Below are positions 7,611-63,886 of a stretch of DNA of 64,000 nucleotides, piece by piece (the first letter of the stretch is position 1; every line of letters starts with the position of its first letter). Position numbers and translations under genes: made by a program. The DNA lies in sequence record KY499642.1. The stretch is one strand, 5' to 3'. The notes below the pieces were generated by a model that ran no database searches, was not told the DNA's origin, and was given only the letters and a program-made list of their open reading frames with translations.

Positions 7611-9137
7611 TTAGAAACCATCTAGACCGAATAGGTCGTCAGTCTCACCTGCAAGCGCGGCTGCGTTTACAGACTTAAGACTCAGGTCAACGTCCAAGTC
7701 AAAGTCCCATGGAAGGATGCCTGTGTCATTGAACTGTAGTACACGGTAGCGGTGTGCCATTGGTGTATCTACAAGCGTACGGTGCTTACCACGCTGTACT
7801 TCCAAGAATGAGTGCTCACCCATCTCAGTAATACCGAAGTACAATTCACCATCTGCTTCGTTATCGACAGTTGTACAACCATCGTAGTAACCTTTACCCG
7901 GAAGTTGACGAACGTACTTAGCAGGGTCAATTGCTTTTAGTTCTTTTGCTTTAGGGGAAAGCTGATGTGGTGCTAGAACTGCACACTTACGTGGCGAAGT
8001 GATGTTACGAACGATACGGTAAAGCTCACGAACATCAGAACCCGTTGCTCCTGTACCCAAACCCGCACGGTTGATTGTACCTAAGTAGTCAGGACGTAGA
8101 ACAACAACATGGTAGCCTAATGACTCGTAGTAAGCGAAACGTTCACGTAGCATAGCCGGAGTAAAGTCTGAGTTAATGTGGCGTTCAAACTTATATGTCC
8201 AACCGCGTTCAGCGAGTTTCTGACAAACGTACTTAGTTGCAGTCTTAGGATCGATGTCTTTAACGTTAGCAGGTTTCTTTTCGAAGTGGTCATGGATAGC
8301 CTTGTATGCAATCGGCATGTTCACTTCCAGTTCGTTCTCAAATGACAAGTCTAGCATCAGTGGCTTCTTGCCCTCAGGAACAAACATGTCAGGGTCATTG
8401 AACAGACCAAGACTTAAGAACGTCATTAGAGAGAACAACGTCTTAGCATTGTGTGGTAGTGCAGGCATTAGCCATAGCTCGCCCGGAACAATACCATCGT
8501 TGATACCCATCATGCGGTTGATGCCTTTCCAACCTGTCTTAAGTGTGGCACCTGCTAATTGCTTCTTGGTGTTCTCGAAGATGTTCTCCATTTCATCTGG
8601 AGTGTCAGTACCAACAGAAGCAACCAGAGTAGAACTTTTACCGTCAAGAGAGTTACGTGTAACTCGCGCTAACTCGTCTGATAATTTGGCAGCAATGTCA
8701 CGAAGGTTTGCGTCGCCTTCACGGTTGATACTATAAGAGGCCGTAGAGATGATCTTTCTTAGCTCTGAGCCGTTAATATAATGTTGCAAATGTGAGATGT
8801 TCGAAGAGATAGCATTCTTGATTTCATTGTCAGTTTCATACTTAACGTCGAACGCCTCTTTGACGCTTTCGTAGAAATGAGTGTCTAGTGAGCAATACAC
8901 GCGTATCTTTTGTAAGACAGTGTGATGGTCAAATTCTAGGTCGCCATTTGCCAAATCAACAACAAGAGTTTTAACTCCAGTTATTGCAGCATGGCCGTCG
9001 CCGTCCGATACGAAGTCGGGTGTGCGAATGTGTGTAGCTGTTTTCTTGATTAGGTTAGCGTAACTACCTTGCTCTCCAAGTTTCTTTTCAAGTAACAACA
9101 AAGTAAGACAGTTAACTAGTGCGATTTTCTCTTCCAT
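7611..9137 (-). CDS. dnaB: DnaB-like replicative helicase (phiKZ gp118-like)
   Basis: LKTGWKGINRM, variant Walker A PALPHNAKT, SFENE catalytic Glu, Walker B LRPDY, HQLS, EADGELY, RGKHR arginine finger; position next to capsid gene. Confidence 0.9.
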   Translation of the reverse strand: MEEKIALVNCLTLLLLEKKLGEQGSYANLIKKTATHIRTPDFVSDGDGHAAITGVKTLVVDLANGDLEFDHHTVLQKIRVYCSLDTHFYESVKEAFDVKYETDNEIKNAISSNISHLQHYINGSELRKIISTASYSINREGDANLRDIAAKLSDELARVTRNSLDGKSSTLVASVGTDTPDEMENIFENTKKQLAGATLKTGWKGINRMMGINDGIVPGELWLMPALPHNAKTLFSLMTFLSLGLFNDPDMFVPEGKKPLMLDLSFENELEVNMPIAYKAIHDHFEKKPANVKDIDPKTATKYVCQKLAERGWTYKFERHINSDFTPAMLRERFAYYESLGYHVVVLRPDYLGTINRAGLGTGATGSDVRELYRIVRNITSPRKCAVLAPHQLSPKAKELKAIDPAKYVRQLPGKGYYDGCTTVDNEADGELYFGITEMGEHSFLEVQRGKHRTLVDTPMAHRYRVLQFNDTGILPWDFDLDVDLSLKSVNAAALAGETDDLFGLDGF

Positions 9138-33980: not shown

Positions 33981-34649
33981 GTGGATATGATAGGTGATGT
34001 AGAATTTAGTTTCGCATTAGTGGGTTCAAGAGAAGCCTCTGTATTCGATTGTGAAGCGTTAGAAGAAGCAGCGGTAGAGTTAATGATGTTAGGTGCGAAA
34101 GGAGCATCTGGTGGCGCTCCGGGGCCAGACACTGCATTAACGAATGCTATTCTTAGAATGATGACAGACACAGGAATGGAAGGGTGGAACTTCGGCTCTA
34201 TTCATCTCCCGTGGGATGGATTCAATGACTTGCGTCGTGGGGATATTGGTGGGGCTTGCATCATTAATGATGAGTCCTACATTCGTAAGCTTGCAGAAAC
34301 CATAGGACGTATTGCCCGTGGTGGGTACTTCGGTTTAGGTCGAGGTGGGTGTAGTTTACATTCTCGTAACCCGTATCAAGTATTGGGGTATAACTTAGTT
34401 ACGCCAGTCAATGTGGTGATCACCTCGGCACCGTTCAATAACAGAGGTAAGGTAACTGGTGGGACAGGTACAGCGTGTGCGATAGCTACGGCAATGGAAA
34501 TCCCTGTAATTAACTTACAGAAGCCGCATGGGTTTGAGCAATTAGAATCGCTACTGGAAGGGTTGAAGAATCCGCCTGCTGGATGGAAAGGGAAGATTCG
34601 CATTACACGCGATGAACCTACAAAAGTACAATTAATTGGAGAAGAATAA
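33981..34649 (+). CDS. DprA-like SLOG-superfamily nucleotide-binding protein
   Basis: ALVGSRE, SGGAPGPD, IHLPWDGFN, LHSRNPYQVLG, GGTGTA...IPVINL match the phage DprA/SLOG family. Confidence 0.85.
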   Translation: MDMIGDVEFSFALVGSREASVFDCEALEEAAVELMMLGAKGASGGAPGPDTALTNAILRMMTDTGMEGWNFGSIHLPWDGFNDLRRGDIGGACIINDESYIRKLAETIGRIARGGYFGLGRGGCSLHSRNPYQVLGYNLVTPVNVVITSAPFNNRGKVTGGTGTACAIATAMEIPVINLQKPHGFEQLESLLEGLKNPPAGWKGKIRITRDEPTKVQLIGEE

Positions 34650-35713
34650 TGGCTGTAGTACAACGTGGGCTGTTTGAAGAGCTAGATAACATCTTTGGTC
34701 AATATCGTGATAAGCGTGTTACTGTGCTTCACTCAGGTGGGTTAGATTCGAATATCATTCTTGCTGGACTTTACTTTGCAGGTGCAGATGTTAATGCGGT
34801 ATCCATCCGCGCTAAAGTATTGGCGTCGTCTACAATCGAAGAGCGTACACGTAAGTTATTTATCGAGCGTTTAAAAGAATCAAAAAAGGGTAGGGGTACC
34901 ATTACCTCAGAAACTGTTACCTTTGATGGTAGACTACAAGGTATCCACCGTAATCGCTTCTCGCAAATGTCTATCTGGTTAAACATGTTGCCGATTGTTT
35001 CTCGTGAAAATGATGATGCAGTTATCATCGGATATGTCATGTCAGACCAAGGTAACTCAATGATTGATTACCTCAAGAAGACATGGCGCACACATGCTCC
35101 ATACCTTAAGTGGACGGCGAAGCTGCCATCGCTAGATTTCCCAGTTACACGTTTCGCTAAATCTGAGCTAATCAAATACTTGCAGCATAAGTGTAAAGAA
35201 ACAGGCTTGGATGAAAACATCGTACACATCCATTGGTTCTGTGAATTACAACAGGGTTCGGTCATGAAACGTTGTGAGACACACTGTGAAAGCTGTAAGC
35301 GCGCTAAGAACGAGAACCTCTTTGACTGGGATGTTGCAACTAATATCGAACGCATCTTTAAAAGCCGTTTACACCTGCTTGAGTTCTTAGAGTTGAATCG
35401 TGACAGTGAATCACTGCGCATGAAGAAGCGCGAGGATGGTAGTGTAGATACATACATTGTCGTAAAGGGTACAACAACAGAACGCTTTGTATACAACACA
35501 CCACGTCGTGAGGTTAACTACTACAAAGACCCTGAAGCGTTATCTATGCCTGAAAAGGCGTCCCCTTACGATCACTTCGAACATGCACGTCCTAATCAGT
35601 TCCCTGACCCAGAACACTTCCCTGAGTATTATTTGAAGTCAGATGAAACTATCAAAGCAGAAGAAGTTGCTGCAATGAAAAAGGAAGAAACTCATGAGCT
35701 CGCAGAATCCTAA
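34649..35713 (+). CDS. QueC-like PP-loop ATPase
   Basis: VLHSGGLDS PP-loop, IGY..SD, FP....K, Zn-site WFCE...CETHCESC; TAATG coupling to SLOG gene. Confidence 0.8.
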   Translation: MAVVQRGLFEELDNIFGQYRDKRVTVLHSGGLDSNIILAGLYFAGADVNAVSIRAKVLASSTIEERTRKLFIERLKESKKGRGTITSETVTFDGRLQGIHRNRFSQMSIWLNMLPIVSRENDDAVIIGYVMSDQGNSMIDYLKKTWRTHAPYLKWTAKLPSLDFPVTRFAKSELIKYLQHKCKETGLDENIVHIHWFCELQQGSVMKRCETHCESCKRAKNENLFDWDVATNIERIFKSRLHLLEFLELNRDSESLRMKKREDGSVDTYIVVKGTTTERFVYNTPRREVNYYKDPEALSMPEKASPYDHFEHARPNQFPDPEHFPEYYLKSDETIKAEEVAAMKKEETHELAES

Positions 35714-49655: not shown

Positions 49656-50420
49656 ATGCAATTCTTTATCTTTGGGTTGAAAATCCCAACTGGCAAACGT
49701 TCAGTAGTAATCAATGCACCACTTAAGTGTGAATCCCTCGGTATCATGATTAATGATGAGATGGTCAAGGACTATGACGTTAAGGGACGTTTGAATCTGT
49801 ACGCTAATCTCATCCACAGTCTAGCCCACCTGTACCAATCTGCAAATGTGATGAACAACGCTCTTGTAGAGAACCTGAAGTCGATTCAGAGCGCTATTGA
49901 AGAGCAGGGCGCGTTACTGGAGCTACGTACTGGCTGGTCAAAGAAAATGGTATCCGCAAGTGACGAGTTGGAACTGGAATTCTTCATTAATGAAGTTGAC
50001 CAATACGGCGTTCCGTTGGATGCAGATGATCCTGATGGATATCTGGTTGCGCGTTATAGCATTGATGACTTCGACATGGTTCCAGTTGCCGTTGAACTTA
50101 AGAAGCATATGACTGCCCAGTCACGTGCAGTAGCTTACGAGCAACTGTTTGGTTTATTGCGTGAACACTCTCCTGAGAAAGAAGAGCGCAATGCATGGTT
50201 CAAACAACTGGAAGGGATTTTCAAGAACGACGAACATCCTATCGTTAAGAACACTTACTGGACGCGTAGCTTTAGTAGCGGTGAATTGAGTGTGGAAATT
50301 ACATTCCGCCCGCTTGAAGATTTAGCAGACCTTTGTGAATTTGAAGGTACGTGCGGTCTGAACATTATGAAAGATGGCGAGAAGTCATTCCTACGTGTAG
50401 AGGAGTTACCGGATGCATGA
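49656..50420 (+). CDS. Hypothetical protein
   Basis: 254 aa, AAGGA SD. Confidence 0.75.
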   Translation: MQFFIFGLKIPTGKRSVVINAPLKCESLGIMINDEMVKDYDVKGRLNLYANLIHSLAHLYQSANVMNNALVENLKSIQSAIEEQGALLELRTGWSKKMVSASDELELEFFINEVDQYGVPLDADDPDGYLVARYSIDDFDMVPVAVELKKHMTAQSRAVAYEQLFGLLREHSPEKEERNAWFKQLEGIFKNDEHPIVKNTYWTRSFSSGELSVEITFRPLEDLADLCEFEGTCGLNIMKDGEKSFLRVEELPDA

Positions 50421-51234
50421 AACACCTAAGGTGACAGAGCTAGGCATTACTCACGTGAATGAATCAAAACCTAACGTTCGCTTATTGGTAGCTGGCACAT
50501 TTGCTAACGCTGCACACTTAGCGGTTGGTCAGAAACGTAAGTACACGGGTGAGCCTTATATCGTACACCCTGCGGAAGTTGTACGTATCCTAGAGCAACA
50601 TGGCATCATCGACGGTACGACTTTAGAAGCGGCATGGTTGCATGATGTAGTGGAAGATACGAAGGTTACTGAAGATGCTATCCTAACACTGTTTGGTATT
50701 GATACGCACTACGTTGTCAAGACTGTAACGATGGAAGAGCATCCTGCTAATGTTGACCGTGCTGCCCGTATGTCGCTAGAACGTGCACGTTGGCGTGCTG
50801 GCGACCATCGTGTTAAGAACGTGAAGTGTGCTGACTTAATCAGTAATGGTCGCTCTATCATTGAACATGACCCAACGTTTGCGGTTGTCTTCATGAACGA
50901 AGTGCGTCTAGCGTTATCTGATCTGTTGGGCGCTAAACCATCGCTGCATGCAGAGCTTAAGAAGATGGTCGATGACTACTTCGATAACATGTTGGCTGAA
51001 CGTATTGGTGCTAAGTACTACCGTACTAAGATTATCAATGACACGTCCGGCGTGTATATGGGTGCAAAAGCAAAAGGTTCAGAGTTACGCATTCGTATCC
51101 GTAAACCATGGGATAAGACTACCTCACAGTTGGGTGACCTATTCCCTAGCAATATGCCGATTACATTAACGGCAGATTGTAGAGTGTATATCGGTGAAAC
51201 TTACCATCCTGAATTAGACGTGGAGCTTTGCTAA
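50413..51234 (+). CDS. SpoT/Mesh1-like HD-domain (p)ppGpp hydrolase
   Basis: AH..VGQKRKYTGEPYIVHP, AAWLHDVVEDT, VKCADLISN. Confidence 0.85.
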   Translation: MHETPKVTELGITHVNESKPNVRLLVAGTFANAAHLAVGQKRKYTGEPYIVHPAEVVRILEQHGIIDGTTLEAAWLHDVVEDTKVTEDAILTLFGIDTHYVVKTVTMEEHPANVDRAARMSLERARWRAGDHRVKNVKCADLISNGRSIIEHDPTFAVVFMNEVRLALSDLLGAKPSLHAELKKMVDDYFDNMLAERIGAKYYRTKIINDTSGVYMGAKAKGSELRIRIRKPWDKTTSQLGDLFPSNMPITLTADCRVYIGETYHPELDVELC

Positions 51235-51895: not shown

Positions 51896-52186
51896 ATGCA
51901 CAACTTAAATGGTGAGTTTGCTAAGATTACGGAAGTTCGCACTAAAACCTTTTCAGAAGAAGATAACAGTGCAGTAGTTCGTGTGATGGCGCAAACTGGA
52001 AAATGCAAACTGCTGCTTGTTTGGGATTCCTCTGTTACTGTTAAAGACATCCTGAAACACTTTAAAGAGGGGCAGGAAGTATTAATAGACAAAGGGAAGC
52101 CGTGTGATGAAGACGGCAATATCTTACCACATTACCAATGGCGTGTGGTAAAGACCTTGTCTGATGTAAGCGGGGCTAACAAGTGA
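51896..52186 (+). CDS. Hypothetical protein
   Basis: Start moved to ATG after AAGGAGG. Confidence 0.7.
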   Translation: MHNLNGEFAKITEVRTKTFSEEDNSAVVRVMAQTGKCKLLLVWDSSVTVKDILKHFKEGQEVLIDKGKPCDEDGNILPHYQWRVVKTLSDVSGANK

Positions 52187-53082
52187 AAGAATATGGCAAT
52201 CTAGTCAAAATATGTCAGGACGACTTTGATGATGGTGTTCAAGAGCTGGTACTGAAATTCAGTAATGGTGATAGCATCACACAACGCCGTGTATGGCCGG
52301 ATGTAATCTATCGTGACAATGATGGTAATGATAGTCTACATGAAGTGGTCTACTACTCTGACGAGTTTAAAGAGCTTGAGAAAGCAAACCCTGACGCGGC
52401 ATTTGCACTTATCTGTAAATGCAGTAAGCTGATTGAAGGAACCGACATTAAGCCACAAGCGGTGGCTGTTGAAGACTTCATCGGCGGTCAAGTAGAAATC
52501 CGTGACCAACGTGTTTTACATGAACACTGGTTCCAAGTGATTCAGATGAGCTGTCGTCACTCCCTATGGGAAGGCGGTTGGTCTGAGTACAAAGAACATA
52601 CGTTTGTGAAAGGGCGTGAAGGTGTCGCATGTGTGCTCTACGATAAAGACAGTGATGTGATTGTCCTTATTGAAGAGTTCCGCATCGGCGCTGTCTATGA
52701 AGACAGTCCGTGGATGGTAGGGATTCCTACTGGCGGGTTGGAAGAAGGCGAAGATCCAATGGAAGGCGCTCGACGTGAATGTGAAGAAGAGGCAGGGTTA
52801 AAACCTTACCACATGGAACACATGTTGACTTACAAACAGTCTCCGGGTTTCACTACACATACACAGCACCTGTTCTACGGTTTAGTGGATGCAAGCCAAG
52901 CGCCTGAAAAGGTTCAAGGTTTGGACTCCGAGGGTGAGGACATTCGTGTGGAAGTAATTCCTGCACATGAAGTTCGTTACATGCTCGGTAAGAAAGAGTT
53001 CAAGAATGGTACAGCCATTACTGCACTCCAACAATTCCTAATGTTCCATTACGAATCAGCACGTAGTGTTGTAGAAGCTTAA
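52183..53082 (+). CDS. nudF: ADP-ribose pyrophosphatase (NudF) with extra N-terminal domain
   Basis: Nudix box GGLEEGEDPMEGARRECEEEAGL, LIEEFRIG, SPG, GLDSEGEDIRV; about 100-aa N-terminal extension. Confidence 0.85.
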   Translation: MKEYGNLVKICQDDFDDGVQELVLKFSNGDSITQRRVWPDVIYRDNDGNDSLHEVVYYSDEFKELEKANPDAAFALICKCSKLIEGTDIKPQAVAVEDFIGGQVEIRDQRVLHEHWFQVIQMSCRHSLWEGGWSEYKEHTFVKGREGVACVLYDKDSDVIVLIEEFRIGAVYEDSPWMVGIPTGGLEEGEDPMEGARRECEEEAGLKPYHMEHMLTYKQSPGFTTHTQHLFYGLVDASQAPEKVQGLDSEGEDIRVEVIPAHEVRYMLGKKEFKNGTAITALQQFLMFHYESARSVVEA

Positions 53083-54312: not shown

Positions 54313-54936
54313 ATGGCTAAATCAACTAACAAGAAAGCAGCGCGTAAGAAGAAACCTACTACACGTCGTAGCCACCACGCTGACAGCGCAATCGTAAAAG
54401 CGTGTCATAAGGTTCTGAACGATATGTACTTGTCGTTCTCTTCAACGCATAAGGAAATTCATCGCCATGGAATGGACCAGCTTTCACATTTACTGTCTAA
54501 CCGCGAACCTAAGAAAGTTTTCGGTTACGCAACTAAGGGCAAGTCAGACCTATCTATCGGTAGAGAGGCATTGTTAGCCGACCTTAACGAAACGCCACGT
54601 GAATGGCAATACTGGGTTGGTGTCTTTACTGATGATGGTGATGAAATTGCATGTGAGATTGAAGCAGGCAAAATCAAAGACTGTGTGATGGGAGACTTAA
54701 CTCCAATCATGCCGGAATTAACCACAAACGTATTAAATGAAGACGTCATCAACCAAGACCATGTGAAAGGTTGGGCATGGCTAGCGGCACCGTCAATGTA
54801 CTTAGACTTCGCAGGTTCTGACGACTTCACATTGAAAATGTTTATCGACCGTTTCGATATCTTAAACCAAGACCGTCGCGAAGAGATGAAAGTACTCCAC
54901 CGCGTAAAATACACAGAAGAACAGGCAGCAGCATAA
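54313..54936 (+). CDS. Hypothetical protein, paralogue of 63362
   Basis: 207 aa, basic N-terminus; YWVGVF, GWAWLAAPSMYLDF. Confidence 0.75.
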   Translation: MAKSTNKKAARKKKPTTRRSHHADSAIVKACHKVLNDMYLSFSSTHKEIHRHGMDQLSHLLSNREPKKVFGYATKGKSDLSIGREALLADLNETPREWQYWVGVFTDDGDEIACEIEAGKIKDCVMGDLTPIMPELTTNVLNEDVINQDHVKGWAWLAAPSMYLDFAGSDDFTLKMFIDRFDILNQDRREEMKVLHRVKYTEEQAAA

Positions 54937-57675: not shown

Positions 57676-57704
57676 GAGGGACGTGACGTCCCTCATTCTT
57701 TTTT
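57676..57704 (+). terminator. Intrinsic terminator
   Basis: GAGGGACG-TGA-CGTCCCTC plus T run. Confidence 0.75.
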
Positions 57705-57718
57705 ATTTGGAGATAATC

Positions 57719-59038
57719 ATGAAACTACTTAAAGCAACATTCAATCGTGTTAACCTTACTCAAACTCCTGTTCGTTACCCAATGACGCCGGATGCGAATG
57801 CTGACGTATTCCAGTGTCTGAGTGAGATGCCGCTGCATCAACTTATGCAGGATAACTTTGGTGACATTAACGCTCTTGCAGAGCAGTTCGAAAAGGATGG
57901 TGTGTTCACACATCGTTACGGTGAAATGGAACCAACTGCTATCCCGTCTGTAGAGTTGGGTGTTGTTAATGCATTCGAGTTCTTTGTTGAGGTAATGCCA
58001 GAAACAGTATATTGCAAGCAATCCACCTACATGCATCTGCGTGGTTATGTCGAAGGCGAGCCTAATACACCTGAAGCAAAGTACCATGTTGTTTCAACTA
58101 TGACGTACAAGAAGGCTGCAAATGAAACCGCAATGCATTTGGTTGACAATGCACTATTCTGTCAAGATGTTGACCTTGATGCGCGTGCACTGCGAGCACG
58201 TGATGGTGTGTATGCCTACGAATCTCTACTGGAGGCAGCTGCTCTTGAAATTGATACCATGATAGATACACGCTCTTCATTCCACGTGGGTGTCCAAGCA
58301 TTCGAAGCGACAGAGGTAAGTCGTGCGCATTACTTAGCACGTTTAGTAATGGCAATCCTACAAAGTGAACAACATCCGCAGTGTGATAGCGTATTCGGTG
58401 TAGAAGGCAATCATTCATTGGTGTGTGATTACCTCAACTTCCCTAACATGGCATATCATCCAATCGTTCGCGAATTGCGCACCAAGAGTGGTGCAGCACA
58501 TCGCACGTTATGCCTTGATGATGATACACTGCGTCAACTATTTGATGGTGGATTAAGTGATGGATGTGAGCTGGAATTTAAAGACCTCATTAAGGTTCGT
58601 CCTGTGGCAGATGCTTGGGACCACTCTTTCGATTCTGTAGCAGCCTACACGATCATGCAGTACATGCATGGAGTAGTTGCAAACCTAGGTGTACAAACCC
58701 TGGAACTGGAGATTGATGAGAACGGTCCAGTCCAACCTAAGTACACGGTGATGCCTGAGATGGATAAAGGTGCACACACATATGCTGACATTAATAGTAT
58801 CGGTGAAGACATCTACGAACAGTTCGAATGCGCTCAACGTTCAGTGTTAGCACACATTGACTTTAACGTTAATGGAATTTCTACTGTAGAAGTAACCGTA
58901 GATGGTGGTGAAACTCGCGTCTTTGAATACGCAAGCTTTGCTTCTAGCTACTGCAACCCTCTGGTATCAAGAGACGCACAAAAGCCTCAAGAACTAGCAG
59001 AGATGTACAGAACAATTTGCGAAGTAATCGCACAATAA
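57719..59038 (+). CDS. Hypothetical protein, possibly a diverged paralogue of a phiKZ-like core protein
   Basis: 439 aa from ATG after GGAGATAA; FEFFVEV, LRGYVE, VTVDGGE..VFEYASFASSYCNPLV recall a roughly 500-aa phiKZ-like core hypothetical (memory only). Confidence 0.55.
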   Translation: MKLLKATFNRVNLTQTPVRYPMTPDANADVFQCLSEMPLHQLMQDNFGDINALAEQFEKDGVFTHRYGEMEPTAIPSVELGVVNAFEFFVEVMPETVYCKQSTYMHLRGYVEGEPNTPEAKYHVVSTMTYKKAANETAMHLVDNALFCQDVDLDARALRARDGVYAYESLLEAAALEIDTMIDTRSSFHVGVQAFEATEVSRAHYLARLVMAILQSEQHPQCDSVFGVEGNHSLVCDYLNFPNMAYHPIVRELRTKSGAAHRTLCLDDDTLRQLFDGGLSDGCELEFKDLIKVRPVADAWDHSFDSVAAYTIMQYMHGVVANLGVQTLELEIDENGPVQPKYTVMPEMDKGAHTYADINSIGEDIYEQFECAQRSVLAHIDFNVNGISTVEVTVDGGETRVFEYASFASSYCNPLVSRDAQKPQELAEMYRTICEVIAQ

Positions 59039-59052
59039 CGGAGATAATAAGA

Positions 59053-59721
59053 ATGACAACAGTACTATTCACTAAGGACAAAGTTTTCTGTGACACGCAG
59101 GTTACTCGCTGTAATGATGTGGCGAGTTTGGATTGCATCAAGTTCTTCCCGCTGTCAGATGGCTCTATTGCGTATGGGGCAGGTTCTCTTAGTGAGATTG
59201 TGGCGTCGGTTGCAATGTATGAAGGTATTGATGAAAAGCTACCAATAGAGCAATACATTACAGGTAGCGGTACGACACTAATCATTGTTAAGCCTAGTGG
59301 ATTCATCGACCGTTTTAAACCGAAGAGGAAGCCGCGTCGGGATACAGAGGCGGGCAGTTCTAAACCACGCACTCCAATATTGTTTTGGAAGGGGACAGAG
59401 CCTTACGTTGCAATAGGTAGCGGACGACCACATATCGAAGCACACTACACCTACGTTGACCATAATCCTAAGCGAGCAATGATAAATGCAGCAAAACGTG
59501 ATACAGGTACAGGTGATCGCATCTTTGAGCTACCACGACATTGGGAGAAAGGGGAATCTGTTGAGATTAAGTTCTATGACGGCTTCACACGTCGTGATAA
59601 GTACCGTAAGCCTATAACTATCACACTAGAGTTCCCTAAAGACCCTTCGTGGATTTATGATGCATTGGTCGGCAAACGTGACCTATACCCTATCAACCTT
59701 AAAGAAATAATCGGAGCGTAA
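59053..59721 (+). CDS. HslV/proteasome-beta-like Ntn-hydrolase (Thr protease)
   Basis: With start after GGAGATAA the N-terminus is M-T-T-V; FCDTQVT, IK, YGAG, VAIGSG, A.KRDTGTG match HslV/proteasome motifs. Confidence 0.75.
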   Translation: MTTVLFTKDKVFCDTQVTRCNDVASLDCIKFFPLSDGSIAYGAGSLSEIVASVAMYEGIDEKLPIEQYITGSGTTLIIVKPSGFIDRFKPKRKPRRDTEAGSSKPRTPILFWKGTEPYVAIGSGRPHIEAHYTYVDHNPKRAMINAAKRDTGTGDRIFELPRHWEKGESVEIKFYDGFTRRDKYRKPITITLEFPKDPSWIYDALVGKRDLYPINLKEIIGA

Positions 59722-59722
59722 G

Positions 59723-60562
59723 ATGTTCGACCACAAGCCAACTCAAATCAAAACACCATGGTCACAAGTAAATGAGCTGTTACATGGCGACGGTTTCTAT
59801 CCCGTAGGTCTTTGGCTACTACCTGTGATTAACCATGAACAGGTATATGACTTCTATGCGCATCTAATTGCTTCACAATCACATCTACTGGATGTGTCAG
59901 AACATCCTCGTCGTAATGATGACTTGAAATACACTATCTGTTATATGGATGCCTCGTCGCAATACGCGGGCGCTATGGATGCTAATGTGGCTCAATACAT
60001 CTCGGAACATACAGGTAAGCCTGTGGGTGACTTACCTGTTGACATCATTAACTACAATGAAGAAGCGTTTGGTGCGCGCGGTATTCGCTTTGTTAGTTGG
60101 CGACTATCGCGTTCGAACTCATTAGATGTTGCAGTGACTGGTATCGGCGACGGTTTGTTAAATGGTGGCTGCGATATGCGTATTTGCATCATTGACCGTG
60201 TTGGTTTAGATGAATATCATACTGAAACAGCACGCCGCATGTTACGTACTATCCGACAGTGGGCAGTCCAGAATCAAGTGCTGGTGTTAGTGAGTGCACC
60301 ACTCGACCCGGTACTTGTTCGTTACGACTCAGAGTTTGATGCACCACTTATTGACCGTTTCGAAGATAAGCAAATGGATCGTCTGTATTATCATAAAGCT
60401 ATCACGCAAGAAGCGGATGGTGAGCTGCTAATTGGACATAACGAGAAAGAGCAAGAGCTAGTTATTCGTCGCGGTAAGTTCCGTGGTGACTCTCGCCCTT
60501 ATGGTGAAGAAGTTCGCTTTGATTCATTAGTAGGGGAGTTTCCTGAATGGAACGCGAAGTAA
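59723..60562 (+). CDS. Truncated, degenerate paralogue of the phage DnaB helicase
   Basis: IKTPWSQVNELL..DGFYPVGLWLLP..NH and EADGELLIG...EL.IRRGKFR align with 7611-9137; Walker A Lys and catalytic Glu absent. Confidence 0.8.
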   Translation: MFDHKPTQIKTPWSQVNELLHGDGFYPVGLWLLPVINHEQVYDFYAHLIASQSHLLDVSEHPRRNDDLKYTICYMDASSQYAGAMDANVAQYISEHTGKPVGDLPVDIINYNEEAFGARGIRFVSWRLSRSNSLDVAVTGIGDGLLNGGCDMRICIIDRVGLDEYHTETARRMLRTIRQWAVQNQVLVLVSAPLDPVLVRYDSEFDAPLIDRFEDKQMDRLYYHKAITQEADGELLIGHNEKEQELVIRRGKFRGDSRPYGEEVRFDSLVGEFPEWNAK

Positions 60563-60720
60563 TGCGCTTGTATCTAGGTATTGAACGTAAACCTGAAAAC
60601 AGTACTATGTTACACGTGCATGTAGCTAAGAAACGTACGTCAGGTCCAAAGGTTAAAATCGTGAATGGTCACGCAATTGTGATCAGAGAACAAGGAGCTA
60701 ATAATGAATCCAGCAATTAA
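60547..60720 (+). CDS. 57-aa ORF resembling DnaB C-terminal H4 segment (absent from ORF track)
   Basis: GGGGAG SD; MEREVMRLYLGIERKPENSTMLHVHVAKKRTSGP...; fills gap between neighbours. Confidence 0.5.
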   Translation: MEREVMRLYLGIERKPENSTMLHVHVAKKRTSGPKVKIVNGHAIVIREQGANNESSN

Positions 60721-61210
60721 TGAAGCGTCTAAACGCATAGAGTTACCAGAAGACTTTAAACAGTCGTTAGCGTCTATGTCACATATCCGAGTTATTGGTC
60801 GTGGCAATAGCGGACGCAGCTTACTGGCACATGCCATTGCAAACTGGCTGATTGCGGGTCACAACTTCGTGAACAACGTGTTCATTGAAGACACAATGGG
60901 TAAAGAAGCATATGCCATGTTTAACGAGTCAGATAAGTACGACTTTGTATTGTTCGACAGCTGCATGTTGCGTAACTTCGACTACAACAAAACAAAACGT
61001 TCGGTATGTTGCGAGACACTATCGGTTGGTGTAAACACGGTGAACTGGCCTGCCACAGTAGCTGAGTTTGAAACACTACTGGCAGTTAAACTGGTACCGG
61101 GTTCAGTGTTCGTGTTTAACGATCACCATAACTCAGAGATTCATGTATGGTATCGTGGTTGTGAGCAGGGGCGTTCACACTTCACCTTCAAGAATCCATT
61201 CGTAGCATAA
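60704..61210 (+). CDS. Small degenerate P-loop-like protein, paralogue of 56064
   Basis: IRVIGRGNSGRS (GxxxxGRS), YDFVLFDSC; AAGGAG SD. Confidence 0.6.
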   Translation: MNPAINEASKRIELPEDFKQSLASMSHIRVIGRGNSGRSLLAHAIANWLIAGHNFVNNVFIEDTMGKEAYAMFNESDKYDFVLFDSCMLRNFDYNKTKRSVCCETLSVGVNTVNWPATVAEFETLLAVKLVPGSVFVFNDHHNSEIHVWYRGCEQGRSHFTFKNPFVA

Positions 61211-61218
61211 CAACATAA

Positions 61219-61246
61219 GGGGTAGTTCGCTACCCCATCTTTATTT
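61219..61246 (+). terminator. Probable terminator
   Basis: GGGGTAG-TTCG-CTACCCC then ATCTTTATTT. Confidence 0.7.
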
Positions 61247-61256
61247 GGGAGATAAC

Positions 61257-61886
61257 ATGTACACATTTGAAACAGAACAACAATTTATGAATGACTTGCG
61301 TGACTTTATGGGTGAGTCTGGCTCTTACGACACCGCAATTAAGTTTAATGAAGAGCGTGAAGAGAAGATACCTAAGATACTTGAGATGATCAACTCAGGC
61401 GGTTTCTATGATGTAGAAATCAAACGCATTACCGAGACACTAACCAAAGAACGTCCTGAAGTGATACGTGTACTTCCAAGCGAGTTCATGGTGTCGGGTA
61501 CTAAGTCACACTACAAACCTAAGCTTGCCGATTACAAAGAGCTCGATGCTGAAGCAATTGCACCATACTGGCAATACCGTGGTACATTCAACCATGAGAT
61601 ACGCCACCTTATCGTGAGCGTGCGTGGTTCAGATAATGTCGAAACCAATTACCTGATTGAGAACCCTGACGACATCCCTACCAACACCATCAATCACCGT
61701 ATAGGTGTTAATGGTTTACGCTGGTTGTTTGATAACTTCCGTAATGTGCGTTCAATAACCCGTGAAGATTTCTATCCTATCCATGAGAAGCCTAAAGCGC
61801 CAGCCATTATCTTTAAGGTATCGCGGAGCAAAGGTTTCCCTAATACTGATAAGCTATTCAAGCCGTACTTGATAGTGGTCAAGTAA
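61257..61886 (+). CDS. Hypothetical protein
   Basis: Start moved to ATG after GGGAGATAA. Confidence 0.75.
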   Translation: MYTFETEQQFMNDLRDFMGESGSYDTAIKFNEEREEKIPKILEMINSGGFYDVEIKRITETLTKERPEVIRVLPSEFMVSGTKSHYKPKLADYKELDAEAIAPYWQYRGTFNHEIRHLIVSVRGSDNVETNYLIENPDDIPTNTINHRIGVNGLRWLFDNFRNVRSITREDFYPIHEKPKAPAIIFKVSRSKGFPNTDKLFKPYLIVVK

Positions 61887-63361: not shown

Positions 63362-63886
63362 ATGAGTAAAGGTTTCACTAAGAAGCAAGTAGAACAAGCA
63401 AAGAAAACAGCACTAAACAACATCATCTTTTATGGTTCATCTGCGGTACGTGGCGTTACCTTTGAAGGGTTTGATACAATGGAACGCTTACTTCGACCTA
63501 AGAAGTACGAGCAAGCCGTAGAAGAACTTAAACACGAGTTACGTACTGAGAATCGTCCTTACATGTTTTGGGTGGCTGTGTTCCGTGAAGTTGAAGATGG
63601 TATTGAAATCGATACTTACCAAATCATCCACAAAGAACTTACGGTACCTGAGATCGACCTGTGGCTAAACGACTACATCACTCAGTGTATTCATGAGAAG
63701 AATCCTGAATCGTGTCAGGGTTATGGTTGGGTAGGTACGCCGTGTATGTATTTCGACTTCGATGCCGAAGAAGAAAAGCTGATTAAGCTGTTCGAACAAC
63801 AAGGCGTTTATGACCAAGAGAAGCGCCAACGTATCATTCATCAGTATACTGCGGAACAAATCGCTAAAATGAAAGGAAACATGTAA
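63362..63886 (+). CDS. Hypothetical protein, paralogue of 54313
   Basis: FWVAVF, GYGWVGTPCMYFDF, QYTAEQ; start after GGGAG. Confidence 0.75.
   Translation: MSKGFTKKQVEQAKKTALNNIIFYGSSAVRGVTFEGFDTMERLLRPKKYEQAVEELKHELRTENRPYMFWVAVFREVEDGIEIDTYQIIHKELTVPEIDLWLNDYITQCIHEKNPESCQGYGWVGTPCMYFDFDAEEEKLIKLFEQQGVYDQEKRQRIIHQYTAEQIAKMKGNM

Follow-up and report, generated by a model that had tools for sequence, protein, structure and literature searches.

A candidate accessory cassette of Vibrio phage pVa-21 with a second PicA/Imp1-like protein, an HslV-type peptidase and a putative helicase-derived pseudo-enzyme

Introduction

How proteins pass across the chimallin shell of the phage nucleus is an open question, and its central known factor is PicA/Imp1 (phiKZ gp69, PhiPA3 gp63, Goslar gp174), an import factor associated with the nuclear shell. 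Distinct surfaces of this protein license different cargoes, and import is species-specific between related phages. Phages of this group (chimalliviruses) replicate with a divergent DnaB-type helicase (divDNAB, PF20307), and neither a helicase loader nor a primase has been identified in them. Some also encode peptidases related to HslV (ClpQ), which form the phage family phrog_1040 (pSal-SNUABM-04 open reading frames [ORFs] ORF1 and ORF116; phiEaH2; SPAsTU). The adenosine triphosphatase (ATPase) expected as partner of the phage peptidase is an HslU/ClpX-like AAA+ protein (phrog_4339; the Erwinia phage RAY gp116 family, Deimos-Minion gp121, pSal-SNUABM-04 ORF121). HslV alone is weakly active and requires HslU. 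Here we describe a cluster of five genes (A to E) of Vibrio phage pVa-21 in which relatives of PicA/Imp1, HslV and the divergent DnaB helicase are predicted to be encoded side by side.

The DNA analysed (the window) comprises positions 1-64000 of pVa-21 (KY499642.1; 232 kb; 100% identity), a phiKZ-like, nucleus-forming jumbo phage of the Chimalliviridae. All five ORFs correspond to GenBank coding sequences (pVa21_075-079) annotated as "hypothetical". It is plausible, and put forward here tentatively, that the cluster is a lineage-specific accessory cassette made up largely of duplicated and since diverged copies of core genes of this phage, in which C and D would form a helicase-binding pseudo-subunit, A would be an import auxiliary, and B would act independently. 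The identities of the genes are well supported; their function we infer. Two elements were known before: a second PicA copy, since one figure legend of the PicA paper gives two PicA homologues for pVa-21, and HslV without HslU, on which authors of related phage genomes also remark. In the literature we found nothing on the dead-helicase family, on the way it is coupled to D or linked to a PicA paralogue, and no account of the cluster as a unit, in agreement with an earlier note on this DNA, which had proposed an undescribed module.

Results and Discussion

Layout of the cluster

The earlier note had placed five tightly packed plus-strand genes between hairpins at 57676 and 61219, and both ORFs and hairpins were confirmed at these positions. 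The genes are separated by 14 nucleotides (nt; A/B) and 1 nt (B/C), or overlap by 16 nt (C/D) and 17 nt (D/E). The features, and the replicative helicase encoded elsewhere in the window, are as follows (aa, amino acids):

Upstream terminator-like hairpin: 57676..57694, plus strand; 8 bp stem with 6 G-C pairs, followed by a T-run, GGAGATAA and the ATG of gene A
Gene A (pVa21_075): 57719..59038, plus strand; 439 aa; tail-less PicA/Imp1 paralogue, its ATG preceded by GGAGATAA
Gene B (pVa21_076): 59053..59721, plus strand; 222 aa; predicted HslV/proteasome-beta-type N-terminal-threonine peptidase, starting M-T-T
Gene C (pVa21_077): 59723..60562, plus strand; 279 aa; putative paralogue of the ATPase (RecA-like) domain of the divergent DnaB helicase
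Gene D (pVa21_078): 60547..60720, plus strand; 57 aa; small basic protein, conserved
Gene E (pVa21_079): 60704..61210, plus strand; 168 aa; contains G32-R-G-N-S-G-R-S39, weakly P-loop-like
Downstream terminator-like hairpin: 61219..61236, plus strand; followed by a T-run, GGGAGATAA and the ATG of pVa21_080
pVa21_009, outside the cluster: 7611..9137, minus strand; 508 aa; divergent DnaB-type replicative helicase (PF20307 divDNAB, E 1.4e-131)

Direct sequence searches of Pfam, NCBIfam and the PDB with the five proteins yielded nothing usable except a sub-threshold nSTAND3 match for E.

Gene C, a putative pseudo-enzyme derived from the replicative helicase, and its companion D

Gene C is related to the phage's own replicative helicase. 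BLASTP of C against pVa21_009 returned two collinear high-scoring segment pairs (5e-5 and 2e-4), and hhalign matched the six-member C alignment to the helicase alignment with a probability of 96.2% (E 2.6e-9) over 231 columns, C residues 9-256 being placed on helicase residues 205-462. A hidden Markov model (HMM) of the C family matched only C and pVa21_009 in the pVa-21 genome, and it ranked pVa21_009 top of six chimallivirus helicases, which is weakly consistent with C having arisen by duplication of the helicase within this lineage.

On its C-terminal side, C retains the motifs EADGEL and RGKFR (RGKxR). Residues A231, D232, G251, K252 and R254 are invariant in all six members of the C family, and the helicase invariants aligned there are D429, G450, K451 and R453. 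The KTxW..N motif near the N-terminus is shared as well, and a Walker-B-like aspartate (D158) is present in five of the six members. In contrast, C has only 279 aa compared with ∼510 aa of the helicase, and its alignment starts at about helicase residue 199-205, so that the N-terminal domain and linker (helicase residues 1-198) have no counterpart. The Walker-A residues K232-T233 of the helicase (K232 being invariant in six helicases) align with V41-Y42 of C, within the segment PVINHEQVY (C 34-42), and none of the six C-family members has a lysine in this column. Neither the catalytic glutamate (E267) nor H391-Q392, all of them invariant in the helicases, has an equivalent in the hhalign columns. 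Judging by its motifs, C cannot bind ATP. The earlier note had taken the 59723 product for a degenerate DnaB paralogue, and both the homology and the loss of the Walker-A Lys/Thr and the catalytic Glu agree with this; that C is a pseudo-enzyme derived from the ATPase domain of the divergent DnaB helicase, and not itself a helicase, is well supported at the level of sequence families. The retained RGKxR segment is presumably the trans-acting (arginine-finger) face of RecA/DnaB motors.

Foldseek searches with a low-confidence model of C returned only members of the RecA superfamily as top matches (KaiC, RAD51 paralogues, DnaB-like helicase), with template-modelling (TM) scores of about 0.3. Impaired paralogues such as XRCC2/XRCC3 of the RAD51 group, and KaiC-type domains, offer a general principle that may apply to C too: an active oligomer is capped or modulated by a relative whose own activity is weak or lost. 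The likeness ends there: a TM score of ∼0.3 on a poor model comes with no sequence link beyond the superfamily, and C is not a member of these groups. The C profile also picked up two long proteins, P0010 (1155 aa) and P0011 (1927 aa), in which seven to eight repeated stretches aligned with one short part of it (E 8e-7 and 4e-6); these were treated as repeat-driven, spurious matches.

Gene D belongs to a family of basic proteins of 57-65 aa with the motif AK.R...VK.VNGH.I.VR conserved across four lineages. Its overlap with C is exactly 16 nt in the window and in the related loci L002, L007, L018, L026 and L027, which implies that D is translationally coupled to C, and the two products probably form a complex. 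The earlier note had likened D to the tail of DnaB. hhalign did pick the tail segment of the helicase (residues 435-462, the beta-hairpin/RGKHR segment), but at a probability of only 5.4% (E 0.007), which is not significant; D against C reached 0.5%, and BLASTP of D for likeness to the helicase tail returned nothing.

Gene A, a second PicA/Imp1-like protein lacking the C-terminal tail

The first gene, which the earlier note had listed as a 439-aa unknown, turned out to be a paralogue of PicA/Imp1. It matched phrog_3141 with an E value of 3e-69, and a metagenomic orthologue only 37% identical to A still did so at 3e-19. An HMM built from four A orthologues had one other match among all pVa-21 ORFs, pVa21_217 (522 aa; E 8e-17), to which A is also linked by BLASTP (4e-10; ∼25-29% identity within alignable blocks). 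pVa21_217 lies outside the window, beside the RNA polymerase (RNAP) subunits pVa21_220/221, and is a canonical member of phrog_3141 (1.9e-128); by tblastn it has matches in the genomes of 145 chimalliviruses, among them PhiPA3 (gene 063) and phage fnug (its phiKZ gp069 orthologue). When the A family was compared by hhalign with an alignment of pVa21_217, PhiPA3 063, a phiKZ gp69 orthologue and RAY gp244 (505-557 aa each), the probability was 96.9% (E 1.9e-10) over 397 columns, A residues 14-434 corresponding to PicA columns 24-488 of 538. Because the alignment stops at column 488, A appears to retain the whole PicA core and to lack the C-terminal tail. A profile search of the PDB with the A family gave no matches, and A showed no relationship to the helicase. 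The identification of A as a full-length but tail-less paralogue of PicA/Imp1 is thus well supported by profile homology. pVa21_031, which also has 439 aa, was tested as the paralogue of A and was ruled out.

Compared with the described PicA/Imp1 proteins, gene A aligns over nearly its full length and shares their family, and pVa-21 retains the canonical copy, pVa21_217, in addition. It differs from them in three respects. It is shorter by a C-terminal tail of ∼50-80 aa; it lies away from the Imp6 and nvRNAP genes, the syntenic copy being pVa21_217; and it occurs in some relatives only and diverges fast (37% identity, compared with 69-80% for the flanking genes). Among the PicA copies compared in a test for duplication within the lineage, pVa21_217 was the one on which the A HMM scored highest.

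Because gene A is a PicA/Imp1 paralogue, the locus belongs to the biology of the phage nucleus. At the nuclear shell, its product may provide an additional surface that licenses cargo, possibly cargo specific to this clade, such as the products of its neighbors. The tail-less second PicA, so far seen in pVa-21, in JHP1101 and in a small number of related contigs from metagenomes, offers a natural comparison: the two copies could separate the parts of the protein that determine cargo specificity from those that mediate association with the shell.

Gene order and divergence in related phages

Related loci were compared for the conservation of the neighborhood. L002 is pVp-JHP1101, and x denotes an extra gene after D.

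pVa-21: A-B-C-D-E-g080
L026: B-C-D-E-g080
JHP1101: A-B-C-D-x-E-g080
L027/L028: A-B-C-D-x-g082; no E
L018/L019: g074-B-C-D-x; no A, no E
L007/L008/L011: g074-A-C-D-g082; no B, no E
L017 (distant; C 25% identical): E-like gene, hairpin, C-like gene

Across these seven arrangements, C-D is the only constant, and A, B and E appear to have been gained or lost independently. Of the linkage expected from the earlier note, that between C and D was kept, whereas that of B, A and E proved variable. The part of the genome in which the cassette sits, upstream of the prohead-protease gene, is variable. The members of the cassette are rare: 1.84 billion representative proteins include three real clusters of the C family; among 50,697 phage genomes searched by tblastn with A, B, C and E, pVa-21 and pVp-JHP1101 were the only ones matched, for B even at E<=10; and scans of the IMG/VR and JGI metagenomes yielded no relatives of B or C. 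Neither the syntenic zone of Seoulvirus SPLA5c (78 kb examined, 82-160 kb) nor the syntenic region of Deimos-Minion contained homologues of A-E by phmmer or HMM.

Rates of divergence differ strongly within the cluster. Between pVa-21 and L018/19, the flanking genes g074 and g084 are 84% and 87% identical, B is 80%, C 41% and D 56% identical. Between pVa-21 and L007, the corresponding values are 69% (g074) and 80% (g084), compared with 37% for A, 50% for C and 31% for D. Divergence is thus much faster in A, C and D than in B and the flanks, and this suggests that the three lie at a specificity or conflict interface.

A reading that takes the conflict literally is that C-D is a decoy or poison subunit, which would absorb a host defence that senses or targets the helicase, or would disable the helicase of a related phage in the same cell; A would similarly shift import specificity during competition between phages. 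The accessory, patchy distribution within a hypervariable region of the genome agrees with this, as do the two- to threefold faster evolution of A, C and D relative to the flanks, the retention of interface-type motifs by C after loss of catalysis, and the species-specificity of PicA-dependent import. However, PADLOC returned no credible match to a defence or anti-defence family, and the fast evolution is equally explained by relaxed constraint on young duplicates. We consider a role of this kind possible but unlikely.

Relaxed constraint taken to its end would make the cluster nothing but functionless gene duplications in decay. The catalytic motifs of C are lost, D is tiny, the P-loop lysine of E is replaced by arginine, and the family is very rare. 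Yet all five ORFs are intact, and so are their orthologues in up to six independent lineages, at identities as low as 25-50%, with motifs, lengths and the 16-nt C/D overlap conserved; decay is thus a very improbable explanation.

Gene B, a predicted HslV-type peptidase, and the question of its partner

Gene B matched the "peptidase HslV family" phrog_1040 (E 1e-38; 4.5e-31 for the JHP1101 orthologue). As the pVa-21 protein may itself be a member of phrog_1040, an independent alignment was built from 40 diverse relatives of pSal-SNUABM-04 ORF1, several of which have Pfam Proteasome matches or were named HslV subunit in their source. The profile of this alignment matched HslV (1m4y) in the PDB at 2.5e-13 and proteasome beta subunits at about 1e-11, and B was the sole match of its HMM among all pVa-21 ORFs. 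By hhalign, the B family and the phage HslV alignment matched with a probability of 96.9% (E 1.5e-10) over 147 columns, covering B residues 1-161. Threonines T2 and T3, which follow the initiator methionine, are invariant both in the relatives of B and in the 40-sequence alignment; D14 and K30 of B coincide with the invariant columns D14 and K30; the GSG at 122-124 aligns with the invariant or near-invariant G118-S119-G120; and a GAG at 42-44 lies beside the invariant G53. Thus, the earlier note's assignment of the 59053 product to the HslV-like N-terminal nucleophile (Ntn) hydrolases stands, and B is, with good support, predicted to be an HslV/proteasome-beta-type Ntn peptidase with all catalytic positions intact.

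The protein has nonetheless departed from its family. It carries a basic insertion of ∼20 residues at ∼89-108 and a C-terminal extension of 60 aa, and it is too diverged to be matched directly in sequence searches of Pfam, NCBIfam and the PDB. An AlphaFold2 (AF2) model of B built from an alignment of three to four sequences was poor (predicted local distance difference test score [pLDDT] 59.2); Foldseek with this model gave the proteasome-like Anbu as the best match in the PDB (E 0.11, not significant), with other Ntn hydrolases among the likewise non-significant matches, and B itself as the only return from BFVD.

B also differs from HslV and phrog_1040 in having no HslU partner in the genome. 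The earlier note had seen no HslU in the window. This holds, and for the HslU-like AAA+ family of chimalliviruses the absence covers all of the pVa-21 genome at the sensitivity of phmmer: with Deimos-Minion gp121 and pSal-SNUABM-04 ORF121 as queries, no pVa-21 ORF was matched at E<=1. Conversely, Deimos-Minion has the AAA+ protein gp121 and no HslV gene within the 45 kb examined. In the Machinavirus pSal-SNUABM-04, the HslV-like ORF116, which is roughly syntenic with gene B, and the AAA+ ORF121 lie five genes apart (L021 18181-22878), just upstream of the prohead protease, and may constitute a phage-encoded HslVU-like pair; this phage has a second HslV-family gene, ORF1. The nuclear protein RAY gp116 was considered as an HslV homologue and rejected, since its presumed Deimos-Minion counterpart, gp121, is an HslU/ClpX-like AAA+ protein; through this counterpart, RAY gp116 would belong to the HslU/ClpX-like family as well. 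The comparisons indicate that the orphan HslV peptidases of these phages are accessory genes in their own right.

One potential partner of B is the HslU (ClpY) of the Vibrio host, in which case the phage peptidase would redirect or sequester host proteolysis and its adjacency to C would be accidental. None of the catalytic columns of the HslV family has been lost in B, HslV is weakly active unless HslU is supplied, and pVa-21 has no HslU-like gene by phmmer; the orphan state has, as mentioned, been remarked on in related genomes. B is, however, so divergent that direct matches are lacking, and it carries the extension and the basic insertion. Moreover, the Machinavirus relative pairs its syntenic HslV-like gene with a phage AAA+ gene, suggesting that a phage partner was lost in pVa-21. 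Borrowing of the host ATPase is thus unlikely, if by no means negligible.

Another potential partner is gene C. According to the earlier note, the helicase-fold proteins would serve as cap or adaptor of the protease. In such a model, B would form stacked hexamers, and C, together with D and E, a six-fold ring capping or gating them in the place of HslU. Both parent families are hexameric, no HslU-like AAA+ protein is detectable in the genome by phmmer, the lineage-specific insertion and extension of B could be a docking surface, and B and C are adjacent at the same 1-nt spacing in pVa-21, JHP1101, L026, L027/28 and L018/19. Despite this constant spacing, B and C do not form an obligate pair: L007/L008/L011 have C-D but no B, and HslV-family genes are widespread, being present in many other chimalliviruses in which no C family is detectable. 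The identities of the adjacent B (80%) and C (41%) are not those expected of co-evolving ring partners. C lacks the N-terminal domain and linker that stabilise DnaB rings, and, devoid of the Walker-A Lys and the catalytic Glu, it would not be able to power unfolding. In pSal-SNUABM-04, finally, the syntenic HslV-like gene has a genuine HslU-like AAA+ gene nearby. We therefore regard a cap formed by C as quite improbable, and the attractive idea that a DnaB-fold ring replaces HslU is not supported. The data agree better with the other possibilities raised in the earlier note, in which C would be a regulator of the replicative helicase or a decoy.

A tentative role for the cassette

In the accessory cassette proposed above, the C-D pseudo-subunit would bind the replicative helicase, or partners that recognize the helicase, and would cap, load or titrate it rather than unwind DNA. 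The retained RGKxR would let C contact the ATP site of a neighboring subunit while lacking a site of its own. B would act alone or with the host HslU, and not with C, and E would be a mobile addition. Being an ATP-blind version of the helicase motor that is always co-translated with a mini-protein, C would be a candidate modulator of a poorly understood replisome, or a decoy in conflicts between phage and host or between phages.

Several observations weigh against this proposal. Besides the N-terminal domain, C also lacks the first ∼55 residues of the PF20307 divDnaB match, and for this reason it may be unable to join the helicase ring. B and C are adjacent with identical 1-nt spacing in five of the six lineages for which context was available, which would also fit a functional link between them. 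Gene A is not required for C-D, because L018/19 retains C-D without A at the locus. The AF2 models are poor (pLDDT 46.7 for C, again from three to four aligned sequences, and 59.2 for B), and the family is limited to a handful of marine/Vibrio-type contigs, so that the comparative sample is small and phylogenetically narrow.

A far-reaching variant would have A, C-D and B work jointly at the phage nucleus, the tail-less PicA recruiting an ATP-blind helicase-fold ring or cap and the HslV-type peptidase to the shell. The shell would thereby gain a further gate for import or surveillance, linked either to proteolysis or to the helicase; the result would be a self-compartmentalised protease or import station whose partner has a RecA rather than an AAA+ fold. 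We consider such a joint action very improbable.

Gene E and the boundaries of the cluster

The earlier note had described E as a small P-loop protein with the signature GxxxxGRS. The motif is present (GRGNSGRS at 32-39, with arginine in place of the Walker-A lysine), together with an hhhhD motif (FVLFD); the P-loop fold itself rests on the motif plus three profile matches, all below threshold and all to the P-loop segment (nSTAND3, E 0.027, 14.6 bits compared with a cut-off of 27.2; FtsY, 0.66; mad8, 0.002). E is possibly a degenerate P-loop nucleoside triphosphatase. By its distribution, it behaves like a mobile accessory gene: it is 95% identical in JHP1101, where A-D are 62-81% identical (A, 62%), it is absent at loci L007, L018 and L027, and an E-like C-terminal fragment occurs upstream of the C-like gene in L017 (BLASTP 7e-8).

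The stretch from 60704 to 61300 is the only part of the cluster that megablast matches in pVp-JHP1101 (L002 8001-8597; 92% nucleotide identity), and the g080 protein is 91% identical between the two phages. It looks as if an E-g080 module had recently been exchanged between pVa-21 and JHP1101; like E, the module is absent from L007, L018 and L027. The extra gene between D and the next gene (L002 7499-8017, that is, JHP1101 gene 081; L018 1737-2231; L027 3619-4113) encodes 164-172 aa without a family match, overlaps the 3′ end of D by 35 nt in all three loci, and is missing in pVa-21. JHP1101 gene 081 was tested as a paralogue of E, and this was ruled out.

The hairpins on either side of the cluster are part of a recurring intergenic layout that consists of a G+C hairpin, a T-run, ATTTGG(G)AG(A/T)TAA and an ATG (window 57676-57718 and 61219-61256; L017 165-208). 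In L017, the same hairpin/T-run/GGAG arrangement lies 5′ of the C-like gene. A scan of the 9-kb region found 13 hairpin sites compared with 6.5 expected. Only ∼25 nt separate the upstream hairpin from the ATG of gene A, which leaves no room for a promoter, and the five genes may thus be a hairpin-delimited segment within a longer transcript rather than a self-standing operon. An 11-mer of the layout was not clearly enriched in the window (six matches compared with 2.2 expected; 1 of 100 shuffles reached six).

Elsewhere in the window, and unrelated to the cassette, lie three auxiliary or host-takeover genes: pVa21_061 (50413-51234) is (p)ppGpp-synthetase-like, pVa21_065 (52183-53082) is an ADP-ribose pyrophosphatase, and pVa21_036 (34649-35713) encodes a QueC-like protein of the queuosine pathway (phrog_1550, 2.6e-52). 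Closer to the cluster, pSal-SNUABM-04 ORF119 matches both pVa21_068 (54313-54936) and pVa21_084 (63362-63886) by phmmer, and g084 as a query also matches a fragment (L002 13-648) that precedes the g071 orthologue, as pVa21_068 does. pVa21_068 and pVa21_084 are possible paralogues on either side of the ∼9-kb variable zone in which the cassette lies, and they could act as recombination anchors.

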